Below are positions 9,226-64,000 of a stretch of DNA of 64,000 nucleotides, one piece after another (positions within the stretch are counted from its first letter, which is position 1; each line of letters opens with the position of its first letter). The stretch lies in the IMG/VR virus record IMGVR_UViG_3300042465_005589, positions 248,001-312,000 of that record. One strand, 5' to 3'. The translations under genes were made by a program, and so were the position numbers. Below the pieces are notes generated by a model that did no database searches, was not told where the DNA came from, and worked only from the letters and a program-made list of their open reading frames with translations.

Positions 9226-10176
9226 TTAAAAATCCTCTGTGAATGTTAATGACTCTCCTAACTTAGCTTTTTGGTACTCCATAGTTCTTGATTCAAAAAA
9301 GTTACCTTTTGTTTCAACAGCAATTTGTTCCATAAATTTGAATGGTTGTTCAACATTAAAATGTTTCTTACATCCAAACTTAACTAGTAGTCCGTCAGTT
9401 ACGAATTCAAGATATTGTTTCATCAAGTTTGAATTCATACCAATTAAAGATACAGGTAATGATTCAGTAATAAACTCTTTTTCAATCTCTAACGCTGATA
9501 ATAAGATTTCTTTAATTCTTTTCTCCGTTGGTTTGTTTTCAACGTGATTGTTAATCAAATGAATTGCAAAATCACAGTGTAAATTCTCATCTTTGAAAAT
9601 AAGACTATTAGCGTTACATAATCCCTGCATAATTCCTCTTGATTTCATCCAAAAAATAGAACAGAACGACCCTGAGAAGAAAATTCCTTCAACCGCCGCG
9701 AACGCAACTAATCTTTCTTGGAAAGAAGCGTTCTCAATCCAATCAAGAGCCCATTTAGCTTTCTTTTGAACCGCTGGTAATCTATCAATTGCGTGGAAAC
9801 ATTCGTCTTTCTCTGTCTCATCAGATACATAAGTATCAATCAATAATGAGTACATTAACGAGTGAATGTTCTCCATCATAATTTGGAATCCGTAGAAGAA
9901 TTTTGCTTCAGCATACTGAACTTCTTTTAAGAAATTCTCCGCCAAGTTTTCATTTACAATACCATCAGACGCTGCGAAAAACGCTAATACATTTTTAAGG
10001 AAAAATCTTTCGTTATCAGATAGGTTTTCCCAATCTCTAATATCGTTAGATAAATCCACTTCTTCAGCTGTCCAAAACGCTGCTTGGTGTTGTTTGTAAT
10101 ATTCCCAAATGTCGTTATGTTCTATTGGGAAGATAACGAATCTGTCATTGTTTGGTTCTAATATTTTTTCTTTCAT
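9226..10176 (-). CDS. nrdB: Ribonucleotide reductase beta subunit
   Basis: [46 protein letters not shown] motifs. Confidence 0.97.
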
Positions 10177-10177
10177 A

Positions 10178-11563
10178 TTAATTATTTTGTTGTTGGTTTT
10201 TTTCTTTTCTCTTGTCTAACAAGTCCTTGATTCTCTGTCTATTTCTTTCTTCGGTTTGTTCTTCTAAACCTAAGAATGTTACCGAACTTTCAGTATCAAT
10301 CTCCAACATACCATTATCAAATTTACAATTCTCAAATACAACACCATCATCACCAATACGGGATTTAGTTATTGCTATCGTCGCCAATTTCATTTCTTTT
10401 TGTTGTAGAGATTTAGCCACGGAAATAATTACGTGTCCAACCTGAGCTTTCTTGATAGAACCACCCATTTGGTCGGTTGTTACAACATCTGACGATATTG
10501 AACTTCTATTACCCTGAGTTGCTGTCCATCCTACCAAATCAAGTTCGTGACACATAGATTCAAAACCTCTCATCACAGACCCTTCAGATTTCCATTCATC
10601 CCCCAAGTTTTTATCCGGAACCACACAATCAATGTAGTCTAACAATACCATATCAATTTTGATTCCTTCTGAAATCATTTTTCTGATTTGATTCTTAATC
10701 TGCATCATTGTTATTGTATCAGAGGGTAATTTTTTAAGTATCAATTCATTAGGCATTTTCTCCTTAATTTCTTGAACTTTAATCATAACCTCTTCTTTTT
10801 TTATCGACAATTCATCCGGATGAATCTTTGTCCATAATGTAATGTGTTTACGTTGGATAATCTTTGGGTTATCCTCAAAGAATATTTGTAAAACGTTATA
10901 CCCCAAATTAAATGCGTGATTTGCAATTTTTGTAAGTAAGGTAGATTTACCTACCCCTGTTGGTGCTAAAATAACACCGATTTCACCCTTAGCCAACCCC
11001 CCTTTTAAGAGTCTATCTATACCCGGAATACCCATCGGTATCGGATGACGATAATCTTCGTTTAGAACATCATCTAAGTTACTAAAAACACTTTCCGTTC
11101 CCTTATCGTGTTCCCCAACTTGTAATGCCTTACTAACCATTTCCTCTAATGTGTCATAACTCTCAAATTCACCGGTGTCGATGATTTTTTGAGCTTTAAC
11201 CATTACTTTCTGTAACTCCTGTTGCTTACAGAACTTCATCGATTTTTCTTGTACAAATTCAGCACCTTCAAGCGTGGACTCCTTAACTTTTGTAAGGGTA
11301 TCAATAATGATTTTAGCCGCTAGAGGTTGTTGTATCTCAGATTTTGTAATTTGTTCTAATGTGTCAAAGGTTGGTGTGTGTTCGTATTTTGTGTAATATT
11401 CTTTAATCATTTGAATGATTAATTTGAAGTATTTATTCTCAAAATAACTTGTTTCAATCACATCTATAATAGACCTTGAGAAGTCTTTGTCGATAATGAT
11501 TTGGTTTAATAATTGTATCTGAAAGGTACTCCCCAGATACTCGAAATTTTTGTTTGACGCCAT
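10178..11563 (-). CDS. dnaB: Replicative DNA helicase (DnaB / T4 gp41-like)
   Basis: Walker [28 protein letters not shown] motifs. Confidence 0.9.
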
Positions 11564-36700: not shown

Positions 36701-37067
36701 AATCAACCGTTGTCGGGTTAACATTCGCTTTTGTGGTGATAGACCAAGATGGTCCTGCGTCGTAACCAGATAATCCTAACACTCTTGTTACGAATAATTG
36801 GTTAGATTGTTGTAAGTATGATTTAGCAATATAAGCCGCTTCGTACTTTGGAATTTGTGTATTTATAAATTTTTCTGGAGAAGTTCCACCGAAGAAATTT
36901 GTGAATTCATCAAAATTTCGTATAAAGATAGGCTCGAAAGCGGGACCTTTTAAGGTCTCACCCACAATACCCAACGTGGTAACTCCCACACTTTGTGCTA
37001 CGAAACTTAAATCAACTTCAGAAGTATATACTCCGGGAGATACGAATACTTTTTGATTTGATGCCAT
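33741..37067 (-). CDS. Contractile tail sheath protein (gp18-like) with Thr/Cys-rich insertion
   Basis: FVSPGVYTSEVD, PWFAAAGYTRG, WGNKTLQ, LDRINVRRLL, IKPTKSLEFI. Start moved to MASNQKVF at 37067. Confidence 0.95.
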   Translation of the reverse strand: MASNQKVFVSPGVYTSEVDLSFVAQSVGVTTLGIVGETLKGPAFEPIFIRNFDEFTNFFGGTSPEKFINTQIPKYEAAYIAKSYLQQSNQLFVTRVLGLSGYDAGPSWSITTKANVNPTTVDFFCESATTVNCVTECIDFKTINYSVEFSACTNSINTVSFTNTSSLPSEISSILYEPYEQFDGSMSTLFDDMSSQIFDIVSTPAKEDTSINYYGAIPTSVYSGLSSVYTGETNVYGVDNVSSNLCNYSAPQNDPWYYSLFDNVGNASYTGFSFWSVVTGLTLTPIITTTTSTSTTTSTTNPCTTTTSTSTTSTTTAKPVNCYTGTLIGVIYIYSGTAYTDYDDLVVATLRSRGLSTYGLENGPVYEVSGLTDVSLDCTGTYSGVTKNPFSTFGVNITSKDGDQYFFETSLSNSDSKYISKVFGSTNFSKPRTVVPLFVEERFQALLTNAWRMGYIRGLNCELTALPDARQSIDPTSIAFYLEKFQSPVSPWVVSELRGNKVYNLFKFTTIADGDSANIDIKISIANMSFNNGTFDVLIRDFFDTDSSPVVLEKYTNCSMNPQDNSFVGKKIGSLDGEYPLLSSYVMVEINEDAPIDALPCGFLGYDYREYAGVRPPFPLIKSKYYYPGEVVYNPPFGLASGADDSTTSAGDNVRRTYLGISDTEGIDVDFFQYKGTQLPLDICNDTEGNPWNFRTRGFHMDKNASGITIPNIFVTSGTPAFFCGDAPFTSDPDSELNPYYRIYARKFTFLVKGGFDGWDIYREFRTNKDEFMLGRKGYLNGSCPTIKYPTASGWGAFKQIIVAGNTQDWANTDYYAYLLGQQTFANPEAVNINVFVTPGIDYVNNSNLVESAIDMIEYSRADSLYVCTTPDYNMYVPSTGNQLDFIYPQEAVDNLANSGIDSNYTATYYPWVLMRDTVNNTQIYLPATAEVTRNLALTDNIAFPWFAAAGYTRGIVNAVKARVKLTQENRDTLYQGRLNPIATFSDVGTVIWGNKTLQVRQSALDRINVRRLLLQARKLISAVSVRLLFEQNDAKVRQDFLDSVNPILDSIRRDRGLYDFRVTVSSDAADLDRNQMTGKIYIKPTKSLEFIDITFYITPTGASFENI

Positions 37068-37161
37068 TAGTTTGTCTTTTTTATTTGTAAATTTATTTTT
37101 ATTGATAAATATTATAAAAAAAACCAAAATACTTTACTTCATAAGAAGTATTTATAAATTA

Positions 37162-49705: not shown

Positions 49706-50479
49706 TTATCCGGCGATATTCCATGGTTTAGTTCCATTAAGTTTCTCTTCATAATTTGAAATAAAAATTTCATTTATTTTTGAAGATAACGGACTAACAC
49801 CATTACATGTTATCCCACTATTATAACTGGCAATTGACATAGACGAGCCTTCACCGGAACCAATTGTTTCTAAATAGTTGTGACGAATATCAAACTCTTC
49901 AGTAAACACAGATAGGTCATCCCATATTTTAAAAAAATTTTCTTCAGTTCCTCTGTCTTTTTTAATAATCCATTTACCTTCCAAATAGTGTTCTATATAA
50001 TCTTCAGGATGACCTTCATGAAACACTTTTTTTAATTTAAAACCATTTTTTTCCGCAAAATCAATACCTTCTTGACCATATTTAGTATTTCTTCTACCTT
50101 GTACTTCACAAGTACTAACATCGTCTGAACAATATGTGAACCCTATATTACCAAACGTTGCAAAAATATGTAGACCAGAGTTTATATCTGATAAAAAATC
50201 AATGTTATCAGTATCTTTAATAAAGACATCAGCATCTAAAAAAACTGCAGTGTCATAGTATTTTAAACATTCTTTCATCACCACTTTTTTTTCATGAAAT
50301 GAAAAATATGGTTTAGTATATTCTATTACTGTTAACAAATTATTTGGTGTATAATGTTCCGGAGAATTAGTCATTACAAAAATATGATGTCCCATATCAT
50401 TTATTTGTTTAATTAATGAATCTCCAAATGTTACATATTTTTCACCATATGTTAATGTACAAAACGCAAAATTACTCAT
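49706..50479 (-). CDS. GT-A fold glycosyltransferase
   Basis: GEKY, VMTN, VFLDADV (DxD); probable start MSNFAF by ATGA overlap. Confidence 0.65.
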   Translation of the reverse strand: MSNFAFCTLTYGEKYVTFGDSLIKQINDMGHHIFVMTNSPEHYTPNNLLTVIEYTKPYFSFHEKKVVMKECLKYYDTAVFLDADVFIKDTDNIDFLSDINSGLHIFATFGNIGFTYCSDDVSTCEVQGRRNTKYGQEGIDFAEKNGFKLKKVFHEGHPEDYIEHYLEGKWIIKKDRGTEENFFKIWDDLSVFTEEFDIRHNYLETIGSGEGSSMSIASYNSGITCNGVSPLSSKINEIFISNYEEKLNGTKPWNIAG

Positions 50480-52206
50480 ATTTCCTCTATTAATGTCCAA
50501 TCTTTATCCCCATACCAATCATAAGTGTGGTAAATTTTAATTTTATCTTTTTTATCAAAAAATAACTCATTTGTTTTTTCACTATTAAAGTGATATACAA
50601 CATCATTAATTTTAAACTCATGGTCTAAAAACTCAACATTATTTTTTAAATTCCAATTAAAATTTAAAACAAATAGATTATCATTTAATTCAAAAATTGA
50701 ATAACTTAAATCTATCTTGTGTTCTTTAAATTGAATGTCTGATACCTTTTTTGAAATTAGTTTACCCTCACTTAATTGTACTGTTTTTCTATCAGGAAAA
50801 TTTTTAATATAATCACTAATAAACCCACCATAAAAGTTATATTTAATATCTTCACCAAGTTTATTAGATATGTTGTGTGAATTAATTTTAAGTCCGCTTT
50901 TAGCTACACATAAACCAACAATATTACCCTCACCAACACCTATTTTATCCACCCCATTAATCATTTCATGAGCATCTAAAGATGATGATAATTCTTTCCA
51001 TGTATCTAAAAAAACTTTCCATTTATTTTCTTCTTTTGAAACAATTAAAACACCTTCTTGATAGTGATAAGCATCATTTATTGGGATATTTAATTTTTCG
51101 GATATACTTAACGCTAATTCACCATAACCCACAACCCTATTAGTAATGTCTTTACTTTCAAAAAAACCTCCGGAAGGTCTTGATATTAATCCCCAATCCC
51201 AAGATGGGTGAAATCCTGGTTTAATTATTCTAATTAAATTGGTGTAACAATTTTTATAATTTTTAAAAAATAATCTACAATCAGAATCAACATATACAAC
51301 AGCATCTTCATATTTAAATCCCTCTTCAAAACAAATTAATTTATCATTATATGAGAATTTTTTATTAGGATAATCTACTAATATAACATTATCTAAAGAA
51401 TCATAGAATTCTTTTTGGTCTGTAACTATTAATATTTTTTGTTTAAAATAATTTAAATCAAAAGCCAATTTAACCGCGTTTTTATTAGCTGTTTCACCAT
51501 GAGCAATAGTTGTAAAAATATAGTTTTGTTTTTTATAGTTTTTTTTACAACTATTATTTCCTTGTATATCTGTTGTAAAATCATTTTTAACTTTTACAAT
51601 TCTTTCATTTGAAACATACACATTGAATTCAGATAATCTAATATATAATGCGGTATCAATTTGATTATCTATATTAGTAAGTTTTTCGATTAATTTTTTT
51701 GCACCATTTGGGGATATTATTAAAGATGGTAAACACGTTACAATACCTTTAGGTATAGATAAGTTTTTACTAAATGGATGTTTTTCTACATCAGTATCAC
51801 CATGACCTAAATAACAATAATCAAAATCATTAGGTAATTCAGATAAAATCATCTTTAATTTATCATCAAATGAATTATCAATTTCCACATCATCTTCAAA
51901 AGTTATTGCAGGAGAATCTAATTCTGATATTTTTTGAAATAAATTAAGATAACTCATTAAAACCCCCAAACCACCTTGAGTCATTGATAATCCCCAAGCG
52001 GTTACTGTATCCATTAAAATATCTTGGATTGCATTTTCACTTAATATACCTTCTTTTAAAGTTCTTGGATTTATAGTAGACCCATCAACTGCGTCAAACC
52101 TTTGATAAATATTTTTTAAAATAGTACTTTTATTTAATTGATTTTCTATAAATAACTTCCTATCCGTTCTTTTTTCTAAATTAATATAAAAACAATGTTT
52201 TAGCAT
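50476..52206 (-). CDS. Bifunctional glycosyltransferase: GT25 + GT-A domain + C-terminal YHTYxWYG domain
   Basis: YINLEKRTDRK, RFDAVDG, FEDD, GAKKL, QID (GT25); second domain VYVDSD. Confidence 0.8.
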   Translation of the reverse strand: MLKHCFYINLEKRTDRKLFIENQLNKSTILKNIYQRFDAVDGSTINPRTLKEGILSENAIQDILMDTVTAWGLSMTQGGLGVLMSYLNLFQKISELDSPAITFEDDVEIDNSFDDKLKMILSELPNDFDYCYLGHGDTDVEKHPFSKNLSIPKGIVTCLPSLIISPNGAKKLIEKLTNIDNQIDTALYIRLSEFNVYVSNERIVKVKNDFTTDIQGNNSCKKNYKKQNYIFTTIAHGETANKNAVKLAFDLNYFKQKILIVTDQKEFYDSLDNVILVDYPNKKFSYNDKLICFEEGFKYEDAVVYVDSDCRLFFKNYKNCYTNLIRIIKPGFHPSWDWGLISRPSGGFFESKDITNRVVGYGELALSISEKLNIPINDAYHYQEGVLIVSKEENKWKVFLDTWKELSSSLDAHEMINGVDKIGVGEGNIVGLCVAKSGLKINSHNISNKLGEDIKYNFYGGFISDYIKNFPDRKTVQLSEGKLISKKVSDIQFKEHKIDLSYSIFELNDNLFVLNFNWNLKNNVEFLDHEFKINDVVYHFNSEKTNELFFDKKDKIKIYHTYDWYGDKDWTLIEEI

Positions 52207-52212
52207 ACTTTA

Positions 52213-53460
52213 TTATAAATTACCGGTTATTCTATCACGCCAACCTTTTGACGTACTATATGGCCATACAACCCAATATTTTGGTTTTGATGTTGTTTGG
52301 AAATCTCTCCAAACTTTACAATATCCGTCATGGTCTTTCATCATAGCATTTATCTCATTAATATCGGCATCTTTTCTATAAAGAGTTTCATCATTTTCAT
52401 TATGAAATGCTACAACCCAAAATTCATAATCTTTTTCCGGTACTTGTTTAAATGAGATATCGATACAATGTTTGAAAATACTCGCAAAACTTGATAACCA
52501 TTCTTCTTCCGTCTCATATATGGTAGGGTTTGGTGCGTATTTTTTATCTAAAGTATATTGTTGGACAGCTCTATTTGAAAATTTAAGACCTGAATAAATT
52601 TCATAATCTTTTAATGTTCTTTCAGTTCCAAATCCATACTTACTAAAATCCATAGTAACTTCTTCACCGTCCATTCCAAAAAGCTGTCTATTCTTTTTGT
52701 GAGATAACTCATTCTTTTTACCCCACTCTTTATCATCATCCCATTGTTTGGTTCTACCCTTACGAGTATATTCGTGCCAAATAACGGTCTTATGTGGGTG
52801 GAATAAATCATATCCGTGAGTGAATGCTCTAACAGCAATTGATATTTCTTCCCCGTGAAAATAAAATTCAGGGTCGTGTTGAACCTCCACACTAAATTGA
52901 CCTAATGTGAATGCCATGTGAGCAGAATAAAAACGAGAAGTGATTGGTTGTTTTAATTTTTCCCAACCAGGTATTGTTTCAGGTAAGAAGAATACCGCAC
53001 CTTCAGGAATGAATCTATCAAAAGACATTCTCCACGGCTCTTTAACTCTACCTGCCGGGTCATTCTCGGGGTCAAATGATGAAACATACCCCGTTAACAA
53101 AGGTTTCTTAAATCCTTTCTTTTGAAGTTGTTTAATCATTTTGATTAAGGTAGTATCCCAATCTTTTTCAAATCTCATATGAGAATCTATTTGAAGTGTA
53201 TACTCCTCACCATCATATAATTGTTGTACTTGATTTCTTGCCCAACAAACACCTTTAGCGTCGGAATACAAAACATCCTTAACTCTAAATCGTTTATCTT
53301 TTTTAAATTTTTCTAAATTATCAAACCCATCTTCAGGGTGATATTGACGACATATACCTATTCTTAAGTTTTTAGGTCTTTTAGCATTTTCAATCATGCT
53401 ATCAAGTGTCGGGATAAGCTGGGGGTCACGATAGGAGGCTATCTGTACAAATATTTTCAT
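52213..53460 (-). CDS. GT60-like polypeptide alpha-GlcNAc transferase (Gnt1/OGNT family)
   Basis: IFVQIASYRD, GVCWAR, LQIDSHMRFEKDWD, FHGEE..IAVRAFTHGYD, WHEY, YGFGTERTL..Y. Confidence 0.85.
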   Translation of the reverse strand: MKIFVQIASYRDPQLIPTLDSMIENAKRPKNLRIGICRQYHPEDGFDNLEKFKKDKRFRVKDVLYSDAKGVCWARNQVQQLYDGEEYTLQIDSHMRFEKDWDTTLIKMIKQLQKKGFKKPLLTGYVSSFDPENDPAGRVKEPWRMSFDRFIPEGAVFFLPETIPGWEKLKQPITSRFYSAHMAFTLGQFSVEVQHDPEFYFHGEEISIAVRAFTHGYDLFHPHKTVIWHEYTRKGRTKQWDDDKEWGKKNELSHKKNRQLFGMDGEEVTMDFSKYGFGTERTLKDYEIYSGLKFSNRAVQQYTLDKKYAPNPTIYETEEEWLSSFASIFKHCIDISFKQVPEKDYEFWVVAFHNENDETLYRKDADINEINAMMKDHDGYCKVWRDFQTTSKPKYWVVWPYSTSKGWRDRITGNL

Positions 53461-53599: not shown

Positions 53600-55528
53600 T
53601 TAGTTTATAAAAGAAAGAAATTTTTTATTACTACTACTGTAAAGTACCCAAGAAGCACCATAGTTAGAAGATATTTGAGTTTGAAACGCAATTGTAGTTC
53701 CAAGCATATATTGTCCAGAATTAGATATATCTGTTTTGATAATAGAACTACCAAAAGTATTCGTAGTCCAACTAACACCAAAATTATTTGTGGTAATAAC
53801 TCTATTATTAGTAGCACCTACTATTCCATATCTTCCATCATAACTTAACTTAAGGTCTTCATTAAAATCTTGACTAACAATACTCATTATTGACCAAGTT
53901 GCACCAAAATCAGTACTTCTGTAACTATTTCCAACTGCTGAAACTAACATCATATATAATCCATTTCCTGATACTGCAACACCTTGAAAATTACTAGAAT
54001 TTGCGGCTGATTGCGAAGGAAAAATATTTAATGTTATATTTGTAAAAGTTATTCCATAATTTGTAGATAGTAAAACATATTTTAATGAACTTGAATCATA
54101 ACCTGCAATAATAACATATTGACCATCCCACGATACACTAGATTGGATAATTAATGTAAAAGCCACAGGAAATGATGCAGGACTCCAACTTGTTCCAAAA
54201 TCACCACTTCTTAAAAGAGTGCCTCCTGATTCAACATACATATATTGTCCATTTTTAGATATTGAAGTCTCCCCAATAAAACCAGAACCCACCCCAATAG
54301 GTGTTGAGTAAGAATTACCATAATCTGAAGATATCTTTACTTGTAAAGGAGAAGTTGCTCCTGCAGCCGCTATAGAGTATTGGTAATTATCGGAAGCATT
54401 TATTCCATAATTTGTAGTGACGCCAACAGACGTTAGTTGACTTATTTCAACAAGTGTATCATCATATATTCTAAAAAATGGAGATGAATTAGATGTACCT
54501 AACATATCCCCTACTCCAAAAACAGGTGTAGGTATTGATGTTGGAGTAGGTGTTGGAGTCGCAGTTGAGGTTGGTGTTGCCGTTGGTGTAGGTGTAGATG
54601 TCGGAGTAGATGTCGGAGTTGATGTTGGCGTCGCAGTCGGTGTTGGTGTGGATGTCGGAGTAGATGTTGGTGTTGATGTTGGTGTTGCCGTTGGAGTTGA
54701 TGTTGGAGTCGCAGTTGGTGTAGGTGTAGGTGTTGGAGTCGCAGTTGGTGTTGCCGTTGGTGTAGGTGTTGGTGTAGGTGTAGGACAAGGATTTAAAATT
54801 TGACAAGTATTAATATCCGGTTGACTATTTAATAAAATGTATGAATACTGATTCGTTGAGGTTATTGGTGATATTGATGTTACACAACCAACATATCCAC
54901 TACTTTGAACATAATAAACCCCTGACAATGGAGAATAAGATGTAGGAATATTATAAACTATAAAAGTGTTTGATGGGTTACAACTATCTTGGAAATACCC
55001 CACAATAGGTGCTAATGTTTGTGTTGGAGTAGTTGTTGGTGTTGCAGTAGGTACTGGTGCACAAGTATTATCAACACACACCTCATTAATCAGAATGTTT
55101 ACCCCCACATCAGCAGAAGGTAATCTACCGCAATAATATAAGGTAGTCCCTGATTGAATAACACTGTTTAACACAACGTTATTACATTGGGTTAAACTAA
55201 AGTTTAAAGTTCCCGAAGTTGTATTTTCAAATGATATACAATTACAAACAACAACCATTGTTGGAGTCGGAGTTGGTGTTGTTGTTGGAGTTGGTGTTGG
55301 TGGTAATGGACAACTTTCTAATAAAAATTCTTCACACCCTATTGAATCAGTCACAACAACTAAAACCTGACTAGCACCTTCTAATTGAGAAGGGATTGGA
55401 AGTTCTAATGTTGGAGGAACAGAAACAACACCGGTTGCAACCACATAACAATACGTTAATGTTAAATCACATATTGATATATCAAATGGTGAGTGTCCGT
55501 TTAAACTGGTTATTTCTATTACTTGCAT
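53600..55528 (-). CDS. Mucin-like Pro-Thr repeat protein with Cys-rich modules and C-terminal Asp-box (BNR) beta-propeller; putative fibre/adhesin
   Basis: Three PT tracts and six SxDxGxxW-type boxes. Probable start MQVIEITS at 55528 after TATTTAT. Confidence 0.75.
54525..54785 (-). repeat. Coding low-complexity repeat (TPT[P/A/S])n, about 85 aa
   Basis: Degenerate 12-nt units such as gttggtgtaggt and gtcggagtagat. Confidence 0.9.
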
Positions 55529-55632
55529 TACAATAAATATAGTTAGAATTATTTTACCATAAATACTTAACAATATTAAAGTTTACTATGGAACTTTATT
55601 AGTAATTTATTATTTTTATAATAAAAAAAAAT

Positions 55633-58600
55633 ATGTCGTTAAAGATTAACCATTACGATTTTATTGAAATTGGTACGTCAGATTTTGATACTTTAATTGA
55701 AACCTCCAATGACAATACTGTCGGTATTAGTATTGAACCTATAAAATATTACATAAATAGATTACCTGATAAACAGAATATTATTAAAGTCCAAGCGGCA
55801 TTATCAACAACAGATGGTGAAGTCGATGTGTACTATATTGAAGATTCTAAAATAGAAGAGAATAACTTACCTTGGTGGGTTAGAGGAAGTAACTCAATAA
55901 ATAATCCTCACCCTTTTGCTATTAAAGAATTAGGTGAAGAATTATACAATAGTTTGGTAACTATTGAAAAAGTTCCAACAATTAGTTGGGAAACATTAAT
56001 TAAAAGATATGATGTTGGTTCAATCGGTTATCTAAAGATTGATACTGAAGGTCACGACCATATCATCTTCAGAGATTTTTTAAACTATTGTAAAGAACAT
56101 TCATTTCCAATCCCAAACAAAATAACACTAGAATATCACGATGGTGTGTCAAACAAAGTTGAGATTGATAAATTAATATCGGAATTACCTGAATATCAAA
56201 TTATCAAACACATTAGTGATATTACATTAATGAAACCTCTAATACCGAGAGTAATACATCAAACATATAAAACTAATGATTTACCAACAGAAATAAGTGA
56301 GGTAGTTCAAAGGTTAAAAGATATGAATCCAACTTTTGAGTATAAATTCTACAACGATAACGATTGTGTTGAATTTATTAAAGAAAATTATGATGAAGAA
56401 ACTCTTAATCTTTATTTAAGTATTAACCCAAATTATGGGTCGGCTAAATCTGATTTTTTTAGATACCTTTTAATGTATAAAGTTGGTGGTGTTTATTTGG
56501 ATATTAAAAGTTGTACTACTAAACCTTTGGAAGAAGTTTTATTACCAACCGATGAATATCTATTAACTCATTGGGAAGGATTGGATTGGGCAGATGAATT
56601 AAAATATTATTTTGGCGAATTTCAAAATTGGCATATTATCTGTAAACCAAATCACCCATTTTTAAAAAGGGTAATTGAAATTGTTAAAGACAATATTAAA
56701 AATTATATTGGTGGGTCGGATAAATATTCTGTGTTAAGATTGACAGGTCCAATCGCTTATAGTAAAGGAATTATTGAACTTATATCTCAACATAAGAAAA
56801 ATAGTGTTGATTCACCCGTTAGAGAATTTTTATTAGAAAACGAGATTGGGTTACAATATATGTCAACCACAATACATCATCATAATCTAATTGATAGTTC
56901 GTATTCAAAAAGAGAACCTTTAATTTTAAAAGATAAGGTTGAGAAATCATATCTATTATATGCAACCGAAAACTATTTGGATGTTGCAAAGATGTGTATT
57001 AAATCAATCCGAGAATATAGTGATTTACCAATTTTCTTATATCTTATTAATTCTAATAAAGTTGTGGATATTAAAGATGTTGCAACCATAAATTGGAATG
57101 TAGAATTAGTTGATGATAATTCTGATAGATACATTCAAGAGGGTGACAATTTTTACATTAATAGAACCAATAAAACGATTTATAACATCTTAATACAAAA
57201 ACCATTAATCACTAAAGACGTTTTATCTAAATACACTAAAACGGTTGCATTTATTGATTGTGATTCAATTGCAACACCATATGTTGATAGAATCTTTGAC
57301 TTATACGATAATGATAAAGATTACCCTTATTTTGTTGAAGGGATTTATGATTTTCTACACGTAGGTGAACGAGGTGGTGCTATGACTAGAGATGATATGT
57401 CAACCACGTTGGAACATCCGGCGTGTGAATTATTTAATGTTAATCAGTATGTTAGAGAAAAATACCGACAAACAGGTTATTATGTTGCAAATGAAAAATG
57501 TATTGATTTTTTATACGAATGGTATCAAATGTGTTCTCACCCTGAAGTATTAAATAATATACCATATTATGCGGCATATAATGAGGAGACCATCCTAAAT
57601 GTGTTATTGTGGAAAAAATTAATATTTGATGGATTACCTTACATTTACGCTAACGGAAATTTAGAATTGATTGATAATATCTATTCAAACTACAATATTA
57701 GTGAAGAAAGTTTATGGATTAAGATTCCAAATAAGAAAGATGATTTGTTATTTATTCACGGAGAAAAGAACATTTTAGAAATGGGTAAAATAATATCAAA
57801 AATTAAAAACCATAATAAAGAAAAAATTAAAGTATTATTCTTGGCACCACATCTGTCAACCGGAGGGATGCCATCATTCCTATTAAAACGAATCGAATCG
57901 TTATTAGAATATTATAAAGATAAAACGGAATTATTTGTTGTGGAATATTCTAACCATAGTGACCACTATGTGGTTCAAAAAAATAGAATTAAAAAATTAA
58001 TACCTCCATCACATTTTTGGACGTTAGGTGAAGATAAAAACGAATTAAAGAAAATTATTGAGGAAAATTATTTTGACATAATTCACTTGGATGAAATGAT
58101 TGAAGATTTTGATGCTCATAATAAATTATCAAATGAGTTAATGAATTTCATTTATAAAAATGACCGAACTTGGAGAGTAGTGGAAACTTGTCATAACGTT
58201 GTATTCCAACCGGAAAAAGATAAAGTGTTTCATCCTGAAGCATACGCTTATTGTTCACCATTTCATAAAGAATCAACATTCTTGAATATGCCATCGTATG
58301 GTGAAGTAATTGAATTTCCGTATAACCCTACAATTGTAATAGATAAAGAAAGTAATAAAGAAAAATTAGGTTTAGACCCAAATAAAATTCACATTATAAA
58401 TGTTGGATTATGGACACCAGGTAAAAATCAAGAAGAAGGTGTTGAGATTGCAAAATTAGTTGAGGGTATTCACCCTGAATTAGAATTCCATTTCATTGGG
58501 AATCAAGCACCTAACTTTCAAGATTATTGGATACCAATTATGAAAGATTTACCATCAAACGTTAAAGTATGGGGGGAGAAAGATAATGTTAGTGATTTTA

Positions 58601-59976
58601 TGTGTGCCGCTGATGTATTGATGTTTAACTCAACTTGGGAATGTAATCCGTTAGTATTAAGAGAAGGTATTTCTTATGGATTAAAAATTTTAGCAAGAAA
58701 CTTACCTCAATATATGGATATGTTTACACCTTATATAACACAATTGTCAGGTGATATTTTTGACATGAAAAATCAACTTTTAGATTTAATTAAAGATGAA
58801 AGTTATTACGAATTCCCAACATATAGAACAAAAGAATTTGCTGAAAAAAATTACGAGTTATACCAAAAAATATTAAACGAACCAATTAAAAAACAAACCA
58901 TGATAGATAATGAAGTACAAATATTCCAACATTTTGTTAAAGAACCATTTTTAGAAATAAAAGGAACTGGAGACAAAGATTACAATGTTAAATTCTTTGA
59001 TGAAGAAGGTATTTGTCATTATGAGAATACCATAAAACCAAATCATTGGGTTAAATTAAATAGAAGTTATTACACCAAATGGAGAGCAGTTGTTACTCGA
59101 GATAATGAGGTAATTTATGATAACACTATGGATTTAACAAATAAAAGAGTTTACATATCTTTCGATAGTAAATCTTTAGGTGACTCGATTGCTTGGATTC
59201 CTTATGTTTTAGAATTTAAAAAGAAACACGATTGTAAAGTTATTGTATCTACATTTTGGAATCATTTATTTGAAAATGAATATCCTGAAATTGAGTTTGT
59301 TGTACCGGGAACGACCGTACATAATCTTTATGCTATGTACACAATCGGATGGTTCTACAATACAGATAAAGAACCTGTATTACCAAACACAATACCATTA
59401 CAACAAACAATTACTAACATATTAGGATTAGAATTTAAAGAGATTAAACCTAATATACACAACACCATTCACCCAAGACCTTATCAAAAGAAATATGTTA
59501 CCATAGCAACTAACTCAACAGCAGGGTGTAAATTTTGGACAAGAGAAGGATGGCAATCACTAATTAACTATCTTCATAATTTAGGATATAAAGTAATAAA
59601 CGTATCCAAAGAAGATAATCCGTTTGAAAATGCAAACAAGATTAAAAACACCTCAATTCATCACACAATGAATGTAATTCACCATAGCGAATTCTTTATC
59701 GGATTATCTAGTGGTTTATCTTGGTTAGCTTGGGCGTTAGGTAAACAAGTTGTAATGATTTCTAACTTTACAAATGAGGAACATGAGTTTATGTTTAATT
59801 GTACTAGAATTGTAAATCATTCTGTTTGTAACGGATGTTGGAATAAACCTGAATTTACCTTTGATAAAGGTGATTGGAATTGGTGTCCTGTTAATAAAGG
59901 AACTGAAAAACAATTTGAATGTCATAAATCGATAACACCGGAAATGGTTATTAATCAAATACAACATTTACTATAA
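55633..59976 (+). CDS. Five-domain enzyme: FkbM methyltransferase + GT32 + GT-A + GT4 + AAH/TibC-like heptosyltransferase
   Basis: FIEIG/LKIDTEGHD; IPRVIHQT/SDFFRY/GGVYLDIK/LTGP; FIDCD; HLSTGG/KNQ/ECNPLVLREG; SLGDSIAW/FIGLSSGLSWLAWA/CNGCW..C..C. Confidence 0.85.
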   Translation: MSLKINHYDFIEIGTSDFDTLIETSNDNTVGISIEPIKYYINRLPDKQNIIKVQAALSTTDGEVDVYYIEDSKIEENNLPWWVRGSNSINNPHPFAIKELGEELYNSLVTIEKVPTISWETLIKRYDVGSIGYLKIDTEGHDHIIFRDFLNYCKEHSFPIPNKITLEYHDGVSNKVEIDKLISELPEYQIIKHISDITLMKPLIPRVIHQTYKTNDLPTEISEVVQRLKDMNPTFEYKFYNDNDCVEFIKENYDEETLNLYLSINPNYGSAKSDFFRYLLMYKVGGVYLDIKSCTTKPLEEVLLPTDEYLLTHWEGLDWADELKYYFGEFQNWHIICKPNHPFLKRVIEIVKDNIKNYIGGSDKYSVLRLTGPIAYSKGIIELISQHKKNSVDSPVREFLLENEIGLQYMSTTIHHHNLIDSSYSKREPLILKDKVEKSYLLYATENYLDVAKMCIKSIREYSDLPIFLYLINSNKVVDIKDVATINWNVELVDDNSDRYIQEGDNFYINRTNKTIYNILIQKPLITKDVLSKYTKTVAFIDCDSIATPYVDRIFDLYDNDKDYPYFVEGIYDFLHVGERGGAMTRDDMSTTLEHPACELFNVNQYVREKYRQTGYYVANEKCIDFLYEWYQMCSHPEVLNNIPYYAAYNEETILNVLLWKKLIFDGLPYIYANGNLELIDNIYSNYNISEESLWIKIPNKKDDLLFIHGEKNILEMGKIISKIKNHNKEKIKVLFLAPHLSTGGMPSFLLKRIESLLEYYKDKTELFVVEYSNHSDHYVVQKNRIKKLIPPSHFWTLGEDKNELKKIIEENYFDIIHLDEMIEDFDAHNKLSNELMNFIYKNDRTWRVVETCHNVVFQPEKDKVFHPEAYAYCSPFHKESTFLNMPSYGEVIEFPYNPTIVIDKESNKEKLGLDPNKIHIINVGLWTPGKNQEEGVEIAKLVEGIHPELEFHFIGNQAPNFQDYWIPIMKDLPSNVKVWGEKDNVSDFMCAADVLMFNSTWECNPLVLREGISYGLKILARNLPQYMDMFTPYITQLSGDIFDMKNQLLDLIKDESYYEFPTYRTKEFAEKNYELYQKILNEPIKKQTMIDNEVQIFQHFVKEPFLEIKGTGDKDYNVKFFDEEGICHYENTIKPNHWVKLNRSYYTKWRAVVTRDNEVIYDNTMDLTNKRVYISFDSKSLGDSIAWIPYVLEFKKKHDCKVIVSTFWNHLFENEYPEIEFVVPGTTVHNLYAMYTIGWFYNTDKEPVLPNTIPLQQTITNILGLEFKEIKPNIHNTIHPRPYQKKYVTIATNSTAGCKFWTREGWQSLINYLHNLGYKVINVSKEDNPFENANKIKNTSIHHTMNVIHHSEFFIGLSSGLSWLAWALGKQVVMISNFTNEEHEFMFNCTRIVNHSVCNGCWNKPEFTFDKGDWNWCPVNKGTEKQFECHKSITPEMVINQIQHLL

Positions 59977-60653
59977 TGGATTATAATAATTTTGATTGGG
60001 GATGGATGGGACAAAGTGAAGAAGGTTTGTTTCATAAAGAACAAATAACTCAAGAAACATTTGTTGATAAAATATATGAAAAGTTTTTTGAAGTTTCTGA
60101 AGGTGATATTGTTTTAGATTTTGGTGCTAGTGTTGGACCATTTACGTATAGTATTTTATCAAAAAAACCAAAACACGTATATTGTCTTGAACCAAGTGAA
60201 TTTGAATTTCCCACATTAGTTAATAATACAGTTGGTCATCCGGTAACACCAATATTGAAGGGTGTCTCAAATACCAACACATATACTGAGGGTAATGACA
60301 TTTATGGTGGTTCAAAACAAATGGAAGGAATTACTTTTAAAAAACTTTGTGAGTTATATAATTTAAAAACCATAGATTTTTTAAAAACAGATTGTGAGGG
60401 TGGTGAATACGATATTTTTAATGATGAGAATTTTGAATTTATTAAAAATAATGTCAAAAAAATCACCGGTGAGTGGCATTTAGGTACACCAATTTTAAAA
60501 GAAAAATTTAAAAAATTCAGAGATACTTACTTACAATACTTTATAAATGTTGAGGTGTACTCAATAGATGGTGTTAATGTAAAATGGAATTTAATGTCTG
60601 ACAATTTTTTAGAACACTATACAGAAATAATAATACACATATATAACGTTTAA
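59976..60653 (+). CDS. FkbM-family methyltransferase
   Basis: VLDFGASVG, CLEP, IDFLKTDCEGGEY, GEWH. Confidence 0.88.
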   Translation: MDYNNFDWGWMGQSEEGLFHKEQITQETFVDKIYEKFFEVSEGDIVLDFGASVGPFTYSILSKKPKHVYCLEPSEFEFPTLVNNTVGHPVTPILKGVSNTNTYTEGNDIYGGSKQMEGITFKKLCELYNLKTIDFLKTDCEGGEYDIFNDENFEFIKNNVKKITGEWHLGTPILKEKFKKFRDTYLQYFINVEVYSIDGVNVKWNLMSDNFLEHYTEIIIHIYNV

Positions 60654-60657
60654 TTAA

Positions 60658-61476
60658 ATGAAACAAATATTTTTTAACTCTTCCCTACCTAGAAGTGGAA
60701 GTACATTAATTCAGAATTTATTAGCTCAAAATCCTGAAATTTACTCAACACCAACATCAGGGTTGGTAGATTTTGTAATCGCTTGTAAAAACAATTACAA
60801 TCACTCACAAGCATTCCAAGCTCAAAATCAAGATGAAATGACCAAAGCCTTTGTCGATTTTTGTCAAGATGGTATGCAAGGTTATTTTAAAAGACTTACT
60901 GATAAACCAATCGTAATCGATAAAAGTCGAGAATGGGGAATCAATTATGGTTTATTGGAAATGCTACAACCAAACCCAAAAATTATTTGTATGGTTAGAG
61001 ATGTTAGAGCTGTCTATAGTTCAATGGAAAAGAATTTTAGAAAAAACCCTCATAGAGAAAATGGGATTCAAAGACCGGCAGAATTAATTGGGACAACCTT
61101 AAACAAACGTGTTGATATTTGGGCTAGTGGTGTTCCTGTTGGTGTTGCAATTGATAGGTTATTAGATACCATTCAACAAGGTATTGCCGAAAAAATGTTA
61201 TTTATTCGTTACGAGGATTTAATGAGTAATCCTGAAGAAGAAATGAGTAGAATATACAATTATTTAGAACTACCATATTATGAAGGACATGACTTTGAGA
61301 ATATATCTCAACTAACTCATGAAGATGATAGAGTACATGGGATATTTGGTGACCACCAATTAAGACCTAAATTTGAAAGAAAACCGGATGATTACATGGA
61401 AGTGTTGGGGTATGAGATATCAATGAACATTAAAAATCATTATAAATGGTTTTATGACTATTTTGGATACGTATAA
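60658..61476 (+). CDS. PAPS-dependent sulfotransferase
   Basis: 5'-PSB SLPRSGSTL, DKS, 3'-PB MVRDVRAVYSS, RYEDL. Confidence 0.9.
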   Translation: MKQIFFNSSLPRSGSTLIQNLLAQNPEIYSTPTSGLVDFVIACKNNYNHSQAFQAQNQDEMTKAFVDFCQDGMQGYFKRLTDKPIVIDKSREWGINYGLLEMLQPNPKIICMVRDVRAVYSSMEKNFRKNPHRENGIQRPAELIGTTLNKRVDIWASGVPVGVAIDRLLDTIQQGIAEKMLFIRYEDLMSNPEEEMSRIYNYLELPYYEGHDFENISQLTHEDDRVHGIFGDHQLRPKFERKPDDYMEVLGYEISMNIKNHYKWFYDYFGYV

Positions 61477-61488
61477 AAAATTTTAATT

Positions 61489-61941
61489 ATGGCAATATAT
61501 TGGTTTACAGGTCAGCCCGGAGCAGGTAAGACCACATTAGCAAAACAACTTAAAGATTATCTACACCCAAGTAATGTAATGCTTGTTGATGGAGATGACA
61601 TTAGAGATGTGTTTCAGAATAAAGATTACTCTGAAAATGGCAGAAGAAAAAATATTGAGAAAGCACAAGACATCTCATTATTTTTAGATTCAAAAGGATT
61701 TGATGTAATAGTTTCATTAGTATCTCCTTATAAAGACCAACGTGATGAATTTAAAAACAAACATAATGTTTTAGAGTTTTACATTCACACCGAAGATATT
61801 AGAGGAAGAGAAGATTATCACGTATCTAACTATGAACCACCAACTGAAAATTTTGTGGATGTGGATACAACAAATGTTATTGAACAAATCTCTATAGGAA
61901 TAATTATAAATAAAATTAATGAATATAAATTAAATGGATAA
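61489..61941 (+). CDS. cysC: Adenylylsulfate (APS) kinase
   Basis: WFTGQPGAGKTT, VDGDDIR, YSENGRRKN, VSLVSPY, YEPP. Confidence 0.9.
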   Translation: MAIYWFTGQPGAGKTTLAKQLKDYLHPSNVMLVDGDDIRDVFQNKDYSENGRRKNIEKAQDISLFLDSKGFDVIVSLVSPYKDQRDEFKNKHNVLEFYIHTEDIRGREDYHVSNYEPPTENFVDVDTTNVIEQISIGIIINKINEYKLNG

Positions 61942-62344
61942 TTGGGAAAGAAAAACACACGTACAAGCAGCATTCGCTTCATCATCGTCAAATAAAAAAT
62001 ATTCAATGTTTGTAGGTAGATGGCAACCGTGGCATCATGGTCATAGAGCATTAATTGACCAACAATTGAATAGAGATAAAAATATCCTACTATGTGTTAG
62101 AGATGTTGAAATTGATGATAAAAATCCGTTTTCAACAGAATGGGTTATTGAAAACTTAAACAAAGAATTAAAAGACCTAATTGATGAAGGAAGATTAGTG
62201 ATTCAGGTTATTCCGGATATAGAAAGTGTTAATATTGGTAGAGGTGTTGGATATGATGTTTATGAACATTTCCCTCCTGAGGATATTAAAAACATTTCTG
62301 CAACAAAAATTAGAGAACAAATGAAAAAAGACGGTAAACTATAA
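61934..62344 (+). CDS. Small HIGH-family nucleotidyltransferase (candidate minimal ATP sulfurylase)
   Basis: GRWQPWHHGH and ISATKIRE; coupled to cysC. Confidence 0.75.
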   Translation: MDNWERKTHVQAAFASSSSNKKYSMFVGRWQPWHHGHRALIDQQLNRDKNILLCVRDVEIDDKNPFSTEWVIENLNKELKDLIDEGRLVIQVIPDIESVNIGRGVGYDVYEHFPPEDIKNISATKIREQMKKDGKL

Positions 62345-62559
62345 TGGTAGAAGTAAAACGACACATAGGTAAAGCCGTTAGTTATAGAATGTTAGGGACA
62401 TTACAAACCTGTATAATCTCATACTTATTTACAGGAAATTTTTTGATTTCAGGTAGTATCGGATTAACAGAATTATGTATAAAACCATTAATATATTTCC
62501 TACACGAAAGAGTGTGGTATAAATGGATAAAGTTTGGATTAAAAGAAAATAAAGAATAA
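62344..62559 (+). CDS. DUF2061-like small membrane protein
   Basis: RHIGKAVSYR...IYFLHERVW signature. Confidence 0.8.
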   Translation: MVEVKRHIGKAVSYRMLGTLQTCIISYLFTGNFLISGSIGLTELCIKPLIYFLHERVWYKWIKFGLKENKE

Positions 62560-62560
62560 T

Positions 62561-62596
62561 ATGAATGTAATTTTTCAAATCAAACTATTTATATAA
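62561..62596 (+). pseudogene. Stranded original 5' end of the GT9 gene
   Basis: ATGAATGTAATTTTTCAAATC (MNVIFQI) versus ATGAATGTAATATTTTCTATA (MNVIFSI) at 63307. Confidence 0.7.
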
Positions 62597-62611
62597 TAAA
62601 ATAAGTTTAAA

Positions 62612-63310
62612 ATGGAAAATAATATTTGTGTTTATTTACATAAAAAACCTAATGGTGATATATTTTATGTGGGAATTGGGACTAATAAAAGACCTTATGA
62701 AAAATTTAGAAAAAATGTATATTGGAAAAATATAACAAATAAATACCCTAATTATATTATTGAAATAATTGAAGAAAATTTAACTTGGGAAGATGCCTGT
62801 ATTATTGAAAAACAATTAATTAGAAAATACGGTAGAAAATGTGATGGTGGTATATTATGTAATATAACTTTAGGTGGTGATGGGGTTTATGGTTTAAAAC
62901 ATTCTCAAGAAACTAAAGAAAAATTAAAAAAATTATCAACCGGAAATAAAAATTGTGTTGGATTTAAACATACTGAAATAACTAAAGTAAATATGAGTAA
63001 ATCTCATTTAGGTAAAATAACACCAAAAGAAGTTAGAGAAAAAATGTCAAAAACTCATTTAGGTAGACCAGGTAGAGAATCAGATAAATTAAATGTTAAA
63101 AAGGCACATATTAAAAATATAGGTAGAGTTCAAAATGAGGATGAAAAAGAAAAAAGAGCCAAAAAATTATGTAAACCAATTGAGGTTAATGGTGTAATAT
63201 ATGAATCAATAAAACAATATTCTGAAATAACTAATATTAACCGAAGTAAAGTTTGGCGAAATTTAAAAGACGAAAAAAATAAAAACTACAAATACATAAA
63301 TAAAAAATGA
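62612..63310 (+). mobile_element. GIY-YIG homing endonuclease with NUMOD3 repeats
   Basis: CVYLH...FYVGIG..R..E..N; repeated KHSQETKEKL / KHTEITKVNMS / EVREKMSK. Confidence 0.88.
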
Positions 63311-64000
63311 ATGTAATATTTTCTATAGAAGGTGGATTAGGAAAATCCATAATGGGTACGGCAGTATTAAAAGCAATAAAAAAACAATATAGTAAAGCTA
63401 ACATAATTGTTGTTAGTAGTTATCCGGATGTCTTTATTGGTAATCCAAACGTTAATAAAGTTTTGACTCACGAAACAATGAGTGGGATATATGAAAAATA
63501 TATCATGGGTAAAGAAGCAAAAGTATTTGTTTCTGACCCATACTCAACTTCAGATTATATTACCGAAGAAAAACATCTAATTCAGTTATGGTGTGAAATG
63601 TATGGTCTAAATTACAATGGTGAAAAACCTGAATTATTTATAAGTAAAGCCGAAAAACAATACTTTGAAGGGTTCTATAAGTTAGATAAACCAATTATGG
63701 TTATTCAACCTCATGGGGGTGCATTTAACCAACCGTTAAAATATAGTTGGACAAGAGATATACCTCAACCAATTATGCAAGACATTATAAATCATTTTGC
63801 AAATGATTACGCTATCTTACACGTTAAACGAGAAGACCAAATTATTTACGAAAATACGTTCCAAGCATTAGATTCATTTAGAAGTATTGCTGTATTATTG
63901 AGTATGGCAACAAAACGATTATTAATCGATAGTAGTGTTATGCACATTGCGACGGCATTAAATTTACCATCAGTGGTGACTTGGGTTGGGACAAATCCGG
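63307..64000 (+). CDS. GT9 (heptosyltransferase-like) glycosyltransferase, truncated at the window edge
   Basis: Not in the track. MNVIFSIEGGLGKSIMGTAVLKAIKKQY..YPDVFIGNPNV...IDSSVMHIATALNLPSVVTWVGTNP. Confidence 0.85.
   Translation, partial: MNVIFSIEGGLGKSIMGTAVLKAIKKQYSKANIIVVSSYPDVFIGNPNVNKVLTHETMSGIYEKYIMGKEAKVFVSDPYSTSDYITEEKHLIQLWCEMYGLNYNGEKPELFISKAEKQYFEGFYKLDKPIMVIQPHGGAFNQPLKYSWTRDIPQPIMQDIINHFANDYAILHVKREDQIIYENTFQALDSFRSIAVLLSMATKRLLIDSSVMHIATALNLPSVVTWVGTNP

Follow-up and report, generated by a model that had tools for sequence, protein, structure and literature searches.

How does a phage that encodes a sulfotransferase and an APS kinase, but no recognizable ATP sulfurylase, obtain the APS from which "active sulfate" (PAPS) is made? 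This question arose from a block of four genes in a window of 64,000 nt, i.e. the whole stretch of DNA analysed here, which belongs to the 318,164-bp record of a lake jumbo phage. We assign this phage to the T4-like type because the same record encodes a Gp23-type major capsid protein (PF07068, 217.7 bits) and gives no match to the NCLDV capsid family PF04451. The initial annotation had proposed a 136-aa nucleotidyltransferase (hereafter NT) in this block as a candidate minimal ATP sulfurylase, on the grounds that the window contains neither Sat nor CysDN and that Sat belongs to the same superfamily. This argument alone is weak for a phage, as APS could simply be supplied by the host. We therefore inspected the locus and its relatives in phages, bacteria and archaea, and found that independent evidence points in the same direction, although in the absence of any biochemical data the assignment remains an inference held with moderate confidence.

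All four genes lie on the + strand. The first encodes a 272-aa sulfotransferase (60658-61476; Sulfotransfer_3, PF13469, 1.5e-22, 81.4 bits against a cut-off of 27; Sulfotransfer_1, PF00685, 2.3e-15, 57.1 bits against 22), the predicted consumer of PAPS, which carries PRSGST and RDVRAVYSS stretches that appear to resemble the 5'-PSB and 3'-PB PAPS-binding motifs and is the only Sulfotransfer_1 match in the genome. It is followed by a 150-aa APS kinase (61489-61941; PF01583), the NT (61934-62344) and DUF2061, a predicted small membrane protein of 71 aa (62344-62559; PF09834, 5.6e-19, 68.8 bits against 23.1). The sulfotransferase stop and the kinase ATG are 12 nt apart, kinase and NT overlap by 8 nt (ATGGATAA), and NT and DUF2061 overlap by 1 nt (TAATG). 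Neither PF01747 (Sat) nor PF01507 (CysD/CysH) had a match in the window or anywhere else in the virus record. The arrangement is not due to chance, as the same kinase-NT(-DUF2061) order recurs in hundreds of independent contigs.

The block is embedded in a glycosyltransferase island. Upstream, on the - strand, are a glycosyltransferase family 25 protein of 576 aa (50476-52206; PF01755, 3.8e-17), a GlcNAc-type glycosyltransferase of 415 aa (52213-53460; PF11397, 9.4e-72), and a 657-aa protein with long Pro/Thr/Ser/Ala linkers and Asp-box-like repeats but without Pfam or PHROG hit (53600-55573), which by inference only is a possible glycosylated or sulfated acceptor. On the + strand, a 1447-aa fusion of an FkbM methyltransferase, a DXD glycosyltransferase, a GT4 and a GT9-like domain (55633-59976; PF05050, PF04488, PF00534, PF01075) precedes a 225-aa FkbM-family methyltransferase (59976-60653; PF05050, 2.6e-8), which stops 4 nt before the sulfotransferase ATG. 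A DNA-level search of cultured phages found only an FkbM gene match. Downstream of DUF2061 lies a GIY-YIG/NUMOD3 homing endonuclease (62612-63310, +; PF07460 and PF01541, weak), followed by a GT9 (heptosyltransferase)-like gene that runs off the window (63307-63999, +; PF01075, 2.6e-4, sub-threshold). The endonuclease is a mobile insertion and not part of the pathway; it is absent at this position in the nearest relatives (loci L104, L216 and L217), in which the GT9-like gene follows DUF2061 after 5 nt. The GT9-like gene itself is conserved downstream of DUF2061 in relatives, with a 94% identical gene in L104 and 52% in L025. In RNA libraries, contigs 90-99% similar to the kinase, NT and DUF2061 were found in four runs; however, these are contigs of relatives and DNA carry-over cannot be excluded, so that transcription of this phage's cassette is not shown.

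The kinase is a short form. It scores above the Pfam threshold (5.5e-17, 62.6 bits against 21.1) but matches only profile positions 4-106 of 152, and NCBIfam adenylyl-sulfate kinase models (5e-18) remain below their equivalog cut-offs (TIGR00455, 65 bits against 138.7). Alignment with canonical kinases showed that the P-loop and the APS-contacting DGDxxR, RxxN and SPYxxxR residues are kept (G8, G13, K14, D34, D36, R39, R52, N55, P80 and R85 are invariant across short and canonical forms), whereas about 18 residues of the lid (KGLYxKARxGxIxxFTGI), including the FTGI segment, are deleted.

We next asked to which family the NT belongs. It is a member of the HxGH nucleotidyltransferase superfamily (PF01467, CTP_transf_like, 3e-5, 24.7 bits against a cut-off of 21), with HxGH at residues 34-37 and ISATKIR at 121-127; H34/H37 and S122/T124/R127 are invariant in 33 aligned sequences. 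Residues G28, R29, H34, H37, P65, G102, G106, S122, T124 and R127 are family-invariant, and R56, D57, N64, R103 and Y107 are nearly so. Importantly, the NT is not a small Sat. The ATP-sulfurylase profile reached only 17.3 bits against a cut-off of 24.3 (E 0.0033, residues 31-94 only), and no Sat chain was among the 70 PDB sequences found at E<=1. Likewise, profile-profile alignment with five Sat domains covered only the C-terminal ISxT region (probability 78%), so that Sat's sulfate ligands could not be mapped onto the NT residue by residue. An AF2 model (pLDDT 87.4) was most similar to NMNAT and then PPAT, with soybean ATPS ranking 37th by Foldseek. Collectively, this indicates that the protein derives from an NMNAT-like ancestor, its nearest relatives being archaeal NadM-type NMNATs.

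Is the NT, then, an NMN adenylyltransferase for NAD salvage, as JGI's automatic annotation names many homologues? The best NCBIfam, PDB and Foldseek matches are indeed NadM-type NMNATs, and large phages can probably carry NAD-salvage genes. However, all NMNAT models score far below their cut-offs (TIGR01527/PRK01153; 30.0 bits against 181.2, and 33.4 against 127), with only the N-terminal half aligning, and a segment of about 31 residues is absent compared with a true NMNAT from a carrier genome. Moreover, an MGIII archaeal genome (G027) holds a true archaeal NMNAT (185 bits, above cut-off) in addition to the kinase-NT pair, and a closed Fidelibacterota genome (G016, see below) has other full-length CTP_transf_like genes. 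As NMNAT function also gives no reason for near-universal fusion or adjacency to APS kinase and APS reductase, we consider this reading very unlikely.

To determine the context of the NT family, we collected related loci from viral contigs and cellular genomes. The kinase lies directly upstream of the NT in 79 of 80 viral loci found with the NT, the NT is present in 79 of 79 viral loci found independently with the kinase, and the kinase is adjacent or fused in most of 80 genome loci. Fusions exist in both orders, one of them being PHROG 10255, and some contain full-length canonical kinase domains (230.7, 179.9 and 172.5 bits in three such proteins). In four Nitrospiraceae loci without adjacent kinase, the NT instead follows sulfite reductase and a CysH with the ECCRIRK and SIGCAPCT Fe-S signature of APS reductases, i.e. 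a second APS consumer. Sulfotransferases of three Pfam families lie nearby in the window, in loci L003, L008, L012 and L036, and in at least about 28 other genome loci. No canonical sulfurylase was found within 8-10 kb in the 80 viral loci, and only one among the 80 genome loci.

These loci also bear on whether the NT is a sugar-phosphate or glycerol-phosphate nucleotidyltransferase that supplies an activated sugar, e.g. ADP-heptose for the GT9-like enzymes, to the glycan island. Enzymes of about 130 aa with this fold may do such jobs (TagD and HldC types), and GT9-like genes flank the block. In contrast, the phage has a separate canonical 136-aa CTP_transf_like gene elsewhere (54.6 bits, full-length match), and L008 has such a gene paired with a PfkB kinase in addition to the triad. 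The module also occurs with no glycosyltransferase nearby (locus L004) and in the sulfite reductase/APS reductase operon. This alternative therefore seems improbable.

We then tested whether carrier genomes encode a canonical sulfurylase. Of 50 NT-bearing genomes, 7 have Sat and 6 have CysD (12 genomes with one or both, 13 counting a partial CysD hit), and 37-38 have neither, including all 14 Marinimicrobia/Fidelibacterota and all 4 MGIII/Thermoplasmata genomes sampled. Most of these genomes are SAGs or MAGs of unknown completeness, and at least one 'genome' locus (L025) is really phage DNA, as it carries a terminase. However, the closed Fidelibacterota chromosome OZ243041.1 (969,550 bp) has a single APS kinase, the NT and a Sulfotransfer_5 gene in a polysaccharide cluster, but no Sat, CysD, CysN or AprA.

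Some observations argue for caution. In one Acidobacteriota locus (L012) an NT-kinase fusion lies divergently next to cysD and cysN, where a second sulfurylase would be redundant, and the Nitrospiraceae genomes hold a Sat-CysC fusion elsewhere, whose neighbourhood (rml and car genes) did not explain why both systems coexist. Thus, the NT could work with the kinase without being a sulfurylase, either by making a different adenylylated anion (a PAPS analogue) or as a regulatory or scaffolding partner of the short kinase, which lacks part of its lid and might need one; APS would then come from the host or an unrecognized enzyme. APS-kinase homologues that phosphorylate another nucleotide-anhydride may have a precedent in Campylobacter capsule phosphoramidate synthesis. 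Structure prediction of a kinase-NT complex gave no answer (score 0.00), which is evidence neither for nor against binding. The invariance of the catalytic HxGH and ISxTxxR residues argues against a purely structural role, the neighbouring sulfotransferases, APS reductase and sulfite reductase are all sulfate-specific, and the closed genome has no other source of APS among the families searched (Sat, CysD, CysN and AprA). We regard this alternative as unlikely, but it is the strongest of those considered.

DUF2061 is an accessory third gene of the phage module, found in 33 of 80 and 65 of 79 related viral loci. The initial annotation had guessed at a role in sulfate handling, and this is supported by context: DUF2061 also lies inside a Flavobacteriaceae cysH-cysD-cysN operon and overlaps CysQ-like genes. 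A look-up in the ESM Atlas returned only other viral DUF2061 clusters.

Collectively, we propose that the four genes form a self-contained sulfation module inside a phage glycan-modification island. In this model, the NT binds MgATP through its HxGH and ISxTxxR motifs, as all enzymes of this fold do, and lets sulfate, instead of the phosphate of NMN, attack the alpha-phosphate to give APS and PPi; this step is inferred, not shown. The NMN-binding segment of the NMNAT ancestor would have been deleted, and the family-specific invariant arginines R56 and R103 are candidate sulfate ligands. As inferred from their families, the kinase would phosphorylate the 3'-OH of APS to PAPS, pulling the unfavourable first step forward, and the sulfotransferase would use PAPS to sulfate a glycan or glycoprotein built by the neighbouring glycosyltransferases and methyltransferases. 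DUF2061, a predicted two-helix membrane protein genetically tied to sulfate activation, may supply sulfate or localize the enzymes, which is the weakest step of the model.

Alternatively, the module could serve to boost host assimilatory sulfate reduction (cysteine supply), as phage cysC is interpreted in the literature (PMC10914622; 10.1101/2021.01.05.425418). The Nitrospiraceae context is assimilatory, 64 of 80 viral loci show no recognizable sulfotransferase within 8 kb, albeit with only a limited seed set used for detection, and cultured Xylella/Xanthomonas phages carry the fusion with no annotated sulfotransferase nearby. Here, however, the sulfotransferase lies only 12 nt upstream of the kinase and within a glycan island, and the phage has no cysH, which makes this purpose doubtful for the present locus.

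Our literature searches found no description of the NT partner, of a non-Sat/non-CysDN sulfurylase, or of DUF2061 function. It is about as likely as not that the NT family represents a third, independently evolved solution to sulfate activation, in which an NMNAT-derived enzyme of about 110-135 residues replaces Sat and CysDN, and pairs or fuses with APS kinase to form a minimal PAPS synthase, with DUF2061 as a possible, previously unrecognized small sulfate-supply membrane protein in phages. The family is widespread in aquatic phages (at least 576 IMG/VR contigs) and in streamlined marine lineages (Marinimicrobia, MGIII archaea, Flavobacteriales) currently scored as unable to activate sulfate. 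ATP sulfurylase is the entry point of the biological sulfur cycle, and only Sat and CysDN are used in genome annotation and metabolic reconstruction. If the proposal holds, genomes of these abundant ocean lineages would have to be re-read, and the many phage 'cysC' auxiliary genes from lakes and oceans would become two- or three-gene PAPS factories, often serving sulfotransferases, rather than lone assimilation genes, implying phage-directed sulfation of glycans. A sulfurylase of about 12 kDa plus a 17-kDa kinase would also be an attractive minimal PAPS-regeneration system for enzymatic sulfation.

How does the module compare with known systems? Sat/MET3-type homo-oligomeric ATP sulfurylases share the superfamily fold and the proposed reaction, and are likewise often fused or adjacent to APS kinase; however, the catalytic core of the NT is about 110 residues against about 210, there is no PUA-like N-terminal domain, and the NT has GRWQPWHHGH and NIGRGVGY (GRWQPxHxGH and NxGRxVGY in the family) instead of QTRNPxHRxH and GRDHAG, with only P-x-H-x-x-H and a G-R pair coinciding. 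The GTP-coupled CysD-CysN sulfurylase has the same proposed product and is also found with CysC in sulfation clusters (NodPQ-like), but its fold is unrelated (PP-loop ATP pyrophosphatase plus GTPase), no GTPase partner is present here, and it is absent from the phage and from most carrier genomes. The closest sequence and fold relative, the archaeal/NadM-type NMN adenylyltransferase (PDB 1f9a, 1ej2, 2qjt; profile E 1.6e-12, Foldseek TM 0.62), shares the GRxQPxHxGH, NPFT, IPDI and (S/T)xxR motifs, yet the NT lacks the roughly 31-residue segment between the IPDI strand and GY(E/D)V, has family-specific invariant R56-D57 and G102-R103, and is found in a sulfate-pathway gene context. PPAT (CoaD) plus dephospho-CoA kinase (CoaE) offers analogous chemistry, with a small HxGH adenylyltransferase followed by a P-loop kinase acting on the ribose 3'-OH, but the kinase here belongs to the APS-kinase family, and the context is sulfotransferases and APS reductase rather than CoA synthesis. 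Finally, bifunctional PAPS synthases (Sat-CysC fusions, metazoan PAPSS) follow the same two-step logic, with the nucleotidyltransferase fused to APS kinase in either order. In the proposed model the kinase-NT pair would act like a split version of these enzymes, in which the nucleotidyltransferase half comes from a different lineage and is about half the size, the two halves are separate overlapping genes in the phage, and the kinase lid is shortened.

The 318,164-bp IMG/VR virus record to which the window (bases 248001-312000) belongs is rated as complete by CheckV, and the window has a G+C content of about 30%. The record contains a T4-type Gp23 capsid gene and no NCLDV capsid, and near-identical DNA occurs in many lake-water metagenomes; it is therefore a freshwater T4-like jumbo phage. 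The tight coupling of four sulfation-related genes described in the initial annotation was confirmed in full. On the + strand, ORFs at 60658-61476 (272 aa), 61489-61941 (150 aa), 61934-62344 (136 aa) and 62344-62559 (71 aa) match Sulfotransfer_3/_1, APS_kinase, CTP_transf_like (with a sub-threshold ATP-sulfurylase hit) and DUF2061 respectively. The junctions are a 12-nt gap, an 8-nt overlap and a 1-nt overlap, and the upstream FkbM methyltransferase gene stops 4 nt before the sulfotransferase ATG. The whole phage genome has no Sat (PF01747) and no CysD/CysH (PF01507).

The block lies in a larger glycan island, which holds a GT25 enzyme, a PF11397 GlcNAc-transferase, a 657-aa Pro/Thr-rich repeat protein (53600-55573, - strand), a single 1447-aa ORF (55633-59976) fusing an FkbM methyltransferase, a DXD glycosyltransferase, a GT4 and a GT9-like domain and, downstream, a GT9-like enzyme. 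The 657-aa protein, located between the GlcNAc-transferase and the 1447-aa fusion, has long Pro/Thr/Ser/Ala linkers and six or so Asp-box-like 'S-x-D/N-x-G-x-S/T-W' repeats but no Pfam or PHROG hit; it looks mucin-like and could be the acceptor of the island's glycosylation and sulfation. Further upstream in the window are very large ORFs of 2300, 1671 and 1128 aa (16969-23871, 24190-29205 and 33741-37127, - strand), which are presumably structural or fibre proteins. A GIY-YIG/NUMOD3 homing endonuclease (62612-63310) separates DUF2061 from the GT9-like gene only in this phage and is a lineage-specific insertion: in the relatives L104, L216 and L217, whose nucleotidyltransferase (NT) is 97% identical, the two genes are 5 nt apart. 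In two further IMG/VR loci (L214 and L215), the flanking FkbM, sulfotransferase, kinase, DUF2061 and GT9-like genes are 87-94% identical to window positions 59976-63999 while the NT is only about 51% identical, i.e. a divergent NT allele has been swapped into an otherwise conserved cassette. Short contigs 90-99% similar to the kinase, NT and DUF2061 genes (61200-62600) occur in four metatranscriptome-type libraries from lake and marine samples, which is compatible with expression of relatives but does not prove it.

To determine what the 136-aa protein is by homology, we compared it with sequence, profile and structure collections. It belongs to a large family of more than 2,700 clusters at 90% identity and 1,103 representatives at 50%, whose members are 110-135 residues long and carry the motifs GRWQPxHxGH, (V/I)RD..D.KNP(F/W)T, IPDIES(V/I)NxGRxVGY and ISATxIR; ten positions are invariant in 33 diverse members. 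The best NCBIfam matches are NadM-type NMNATs, albeit far below their cut-offs. Likewise, a family profile recovered archaeal NMNAT structures first (1f9a, 1.6e-12), followed by PPAT, and no Sat chain. The AlphaFold model (pLDDT 87.4) is most like M. thermautotrophicus NMNAT (TM 0.62) and PPAT, whereas soybean ATP sulfurylase appears only at rank 37. When aligned with a genuine NMNAT taken from a genome that also carries the family, the NT lacks about 31 residues between the IPDI strand and the GY(D/E)V strand, a region that probably contributes the NMN pocket in NMNATs, and has an invariant G-R at the deletion edge. The protein is thus a member of the HxGH superfamily, but neither a member of the Sat family nor a bona fide NMNAT.

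We next asked with which genes the NT family is associated. The same kinase-NT-DUF2061 triad was seen in unrelated phage-like contigs. Of 80 IMG/VR loci retrieved with the NT, 79 have the kinase directly upstream, the exception being located at a contig edge; of 79 loci retrieved independently with the kinase, 79 have the NT and 65 have DUF2061. Most of the 80 loci from species-representative genomes have the kinase adjacent, overlapping or fused. Fusions occur as kinase-NT and as NT-kinase, several of them with full-length canonical APS kinase domains. PHROG 10255 ('kinase') is such a fusion and is carried by cultured Xylella, Xanthomonas and Stenotrophomonas phages. In Xylella phage Sano (15406-16143) and Stenotrophomonas phage DLP_6, the 245-aa kinase-NT fusion is annotated as 'kinase' or 'hypothetical'; in Sano, it lies among early genes near a 'cysteine dioxygenase' and a MazG-like pyrophosphatase, with no annotated sulfotransferase. 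Some loci carry a second nucleotidyltransferase gene beside the NT (L069:9597-9995; L051:8391-8741; L176 and L179): in L069, a 132-aa CTP_transf_like gene lies between the kinase and the NT, while elsewhere there is a second family member.

In contrast, in four Nitrospiraceae loci (L055, L057, L061 and L062; NT at about 9935-10471) the NT stands without a kinase, directly behind an 819-aa sulfite reductase with a TusA domain and a CysH whose ECCRIRK and SIGCAPCT motifs are expected to mark the Fe-S, APS-specific reductases, i.e. a second APS consumer. The NT of these loci is 165-178 aa long and has a conserved W..KxxNHGG N-terminal extension. However, the same genomes also hold a 582-588-aa Sat-CysC elsewhere, next to rml and car genes. 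Among 50 genomes carrying the NT, 7 have Sat and 6 have CysD (one has both, and one more has a partial hit), so 37-38 have neither; the latter include all 14 Marinimicrobia/Fidelibacterota and all 4 MGIII/Thermoplasmata genomes. Although most of these are incomplete SAGs or MAGs, OZ243041.1 is a single 969,550-bp chromosome. It encodes one APS kinase, the overlapping NT and, two genes downstream in a capsule-type cluster, a Sulfotransfer_5 protein, but no Sat, CysD, CysN or AprA; something in that cell must make APS. No Sat domain lies within 8-10 kb of any of the 160 loci, and CysDN lies near only one, an Acidobacteriota locus in which cysD/cysN are located next to an NT-kinase fusion.

Two other activities were considered for the NT. 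NMNAT activity is very unlikely: although the closest homologues are NMNATs, the MGIII genome G027 has both a true NMNAT and the kinase-NT pair. Sugar-phosphate activity is similarly improbable, as the phage has a separate, canonical 136-aa CTP_transf_like protein (54.6 bits, full-length match) outside the window, at 131418-131828 of the record; its neighbours have no Pfam hits, and a ClpP gene lies about 2 kb away. Likewise, locus L008 has one such gene paired with a PfkB kinase in addition to the triad.

Compared with canonical APS kinases, including those fused to the NT, the phage/Marinimicrobia/MGIII form of the kinase lacks 4 + 14 residues of the lid, including the FTGI stretch. It keeps the P-loop, DGDxxR, RxxN, SPYxxxR and YExP residues as invariant positions, and is probably still an APS kinase, although it fails the equivalog thresholds.

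We found no paper that assigns DUF2061 a function. In the 3.9-Mb contig of a Flavobacteriaceae genome (G007:C1:3674000-3679000), it sits between an Rrf2 regulator and cysH-cysD-cysN-sulfite reductase, overlapping cysH by 16 nt. In two Bacteroidetes SAGs (L191:1459-2690 and L192:463-1689), a tandem-duplicated DUF2061 (143-145 aa) overlaps an inositol-monophosphatase-family (CysQ-like) gene about 10-12 kb from the kinase-NT pair, and elsewhere DUF2061 lies two genes from a TauE/SafE permease. It therefore travels with sulfate activation whichever sulfurylase is used. Tandem two- and three-repeat versions suggest that it works as an oligomer of helical hairpins, as small channels and transporters do; this, and a role in sulfate supply, are inferences. 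In the NT-kinase module, DUF2061 appears essentially only in phage DNA. The 'Flavobacteriaceae' triad locus L025, on a contig binned in a MAG, carries the same sulfotransferase-kinase-NT-DUF2061-GT9-like cassette (51-57% identity) together with a terminase large subunit and phage repeat proteins; it is phage DNA inside a MAG, and possibly a hint at a host lineage.

Collectively, the gene content, order, motifs and associations support, as the leading hypothesis, the proposal of the initial annotation that the small NT is an ATP sulfurylase. In the most likely mechanism, every catalytic step of which is inferred in the absence of assays, the NT adenylylates sulfate to APS, the kinase makes PAPS, and the sulfotransferase sulfates a glycan or glycoprotein assembled by the island's transferases, with DUF2061 assisting at the membrane. 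We consider the sulfurylase reading more likely than not, although cysD/cysN accompany the NT-kinase fusion in one Acidobacteriota locus, Sat-CysC coexists with the NT in Nitrospiraceae and a phage could draw on host APS; a different kinase-coupled role for the NT is possible but doubtful. In the open-access literature that we searched, phage cysC is treated as a lone assimilatory AMG without mention of the NT partner, DUF2061 or sulfotransferases, and no non-canonical sulfurylase was found, which does not prove novelty. Compared with known systems, the module works like a split PAPS synthase, but its NT does not satisfy the criteria for Sat; it is best described as a new NMNAT-derived family proposed to have converged on Sat's reaction.
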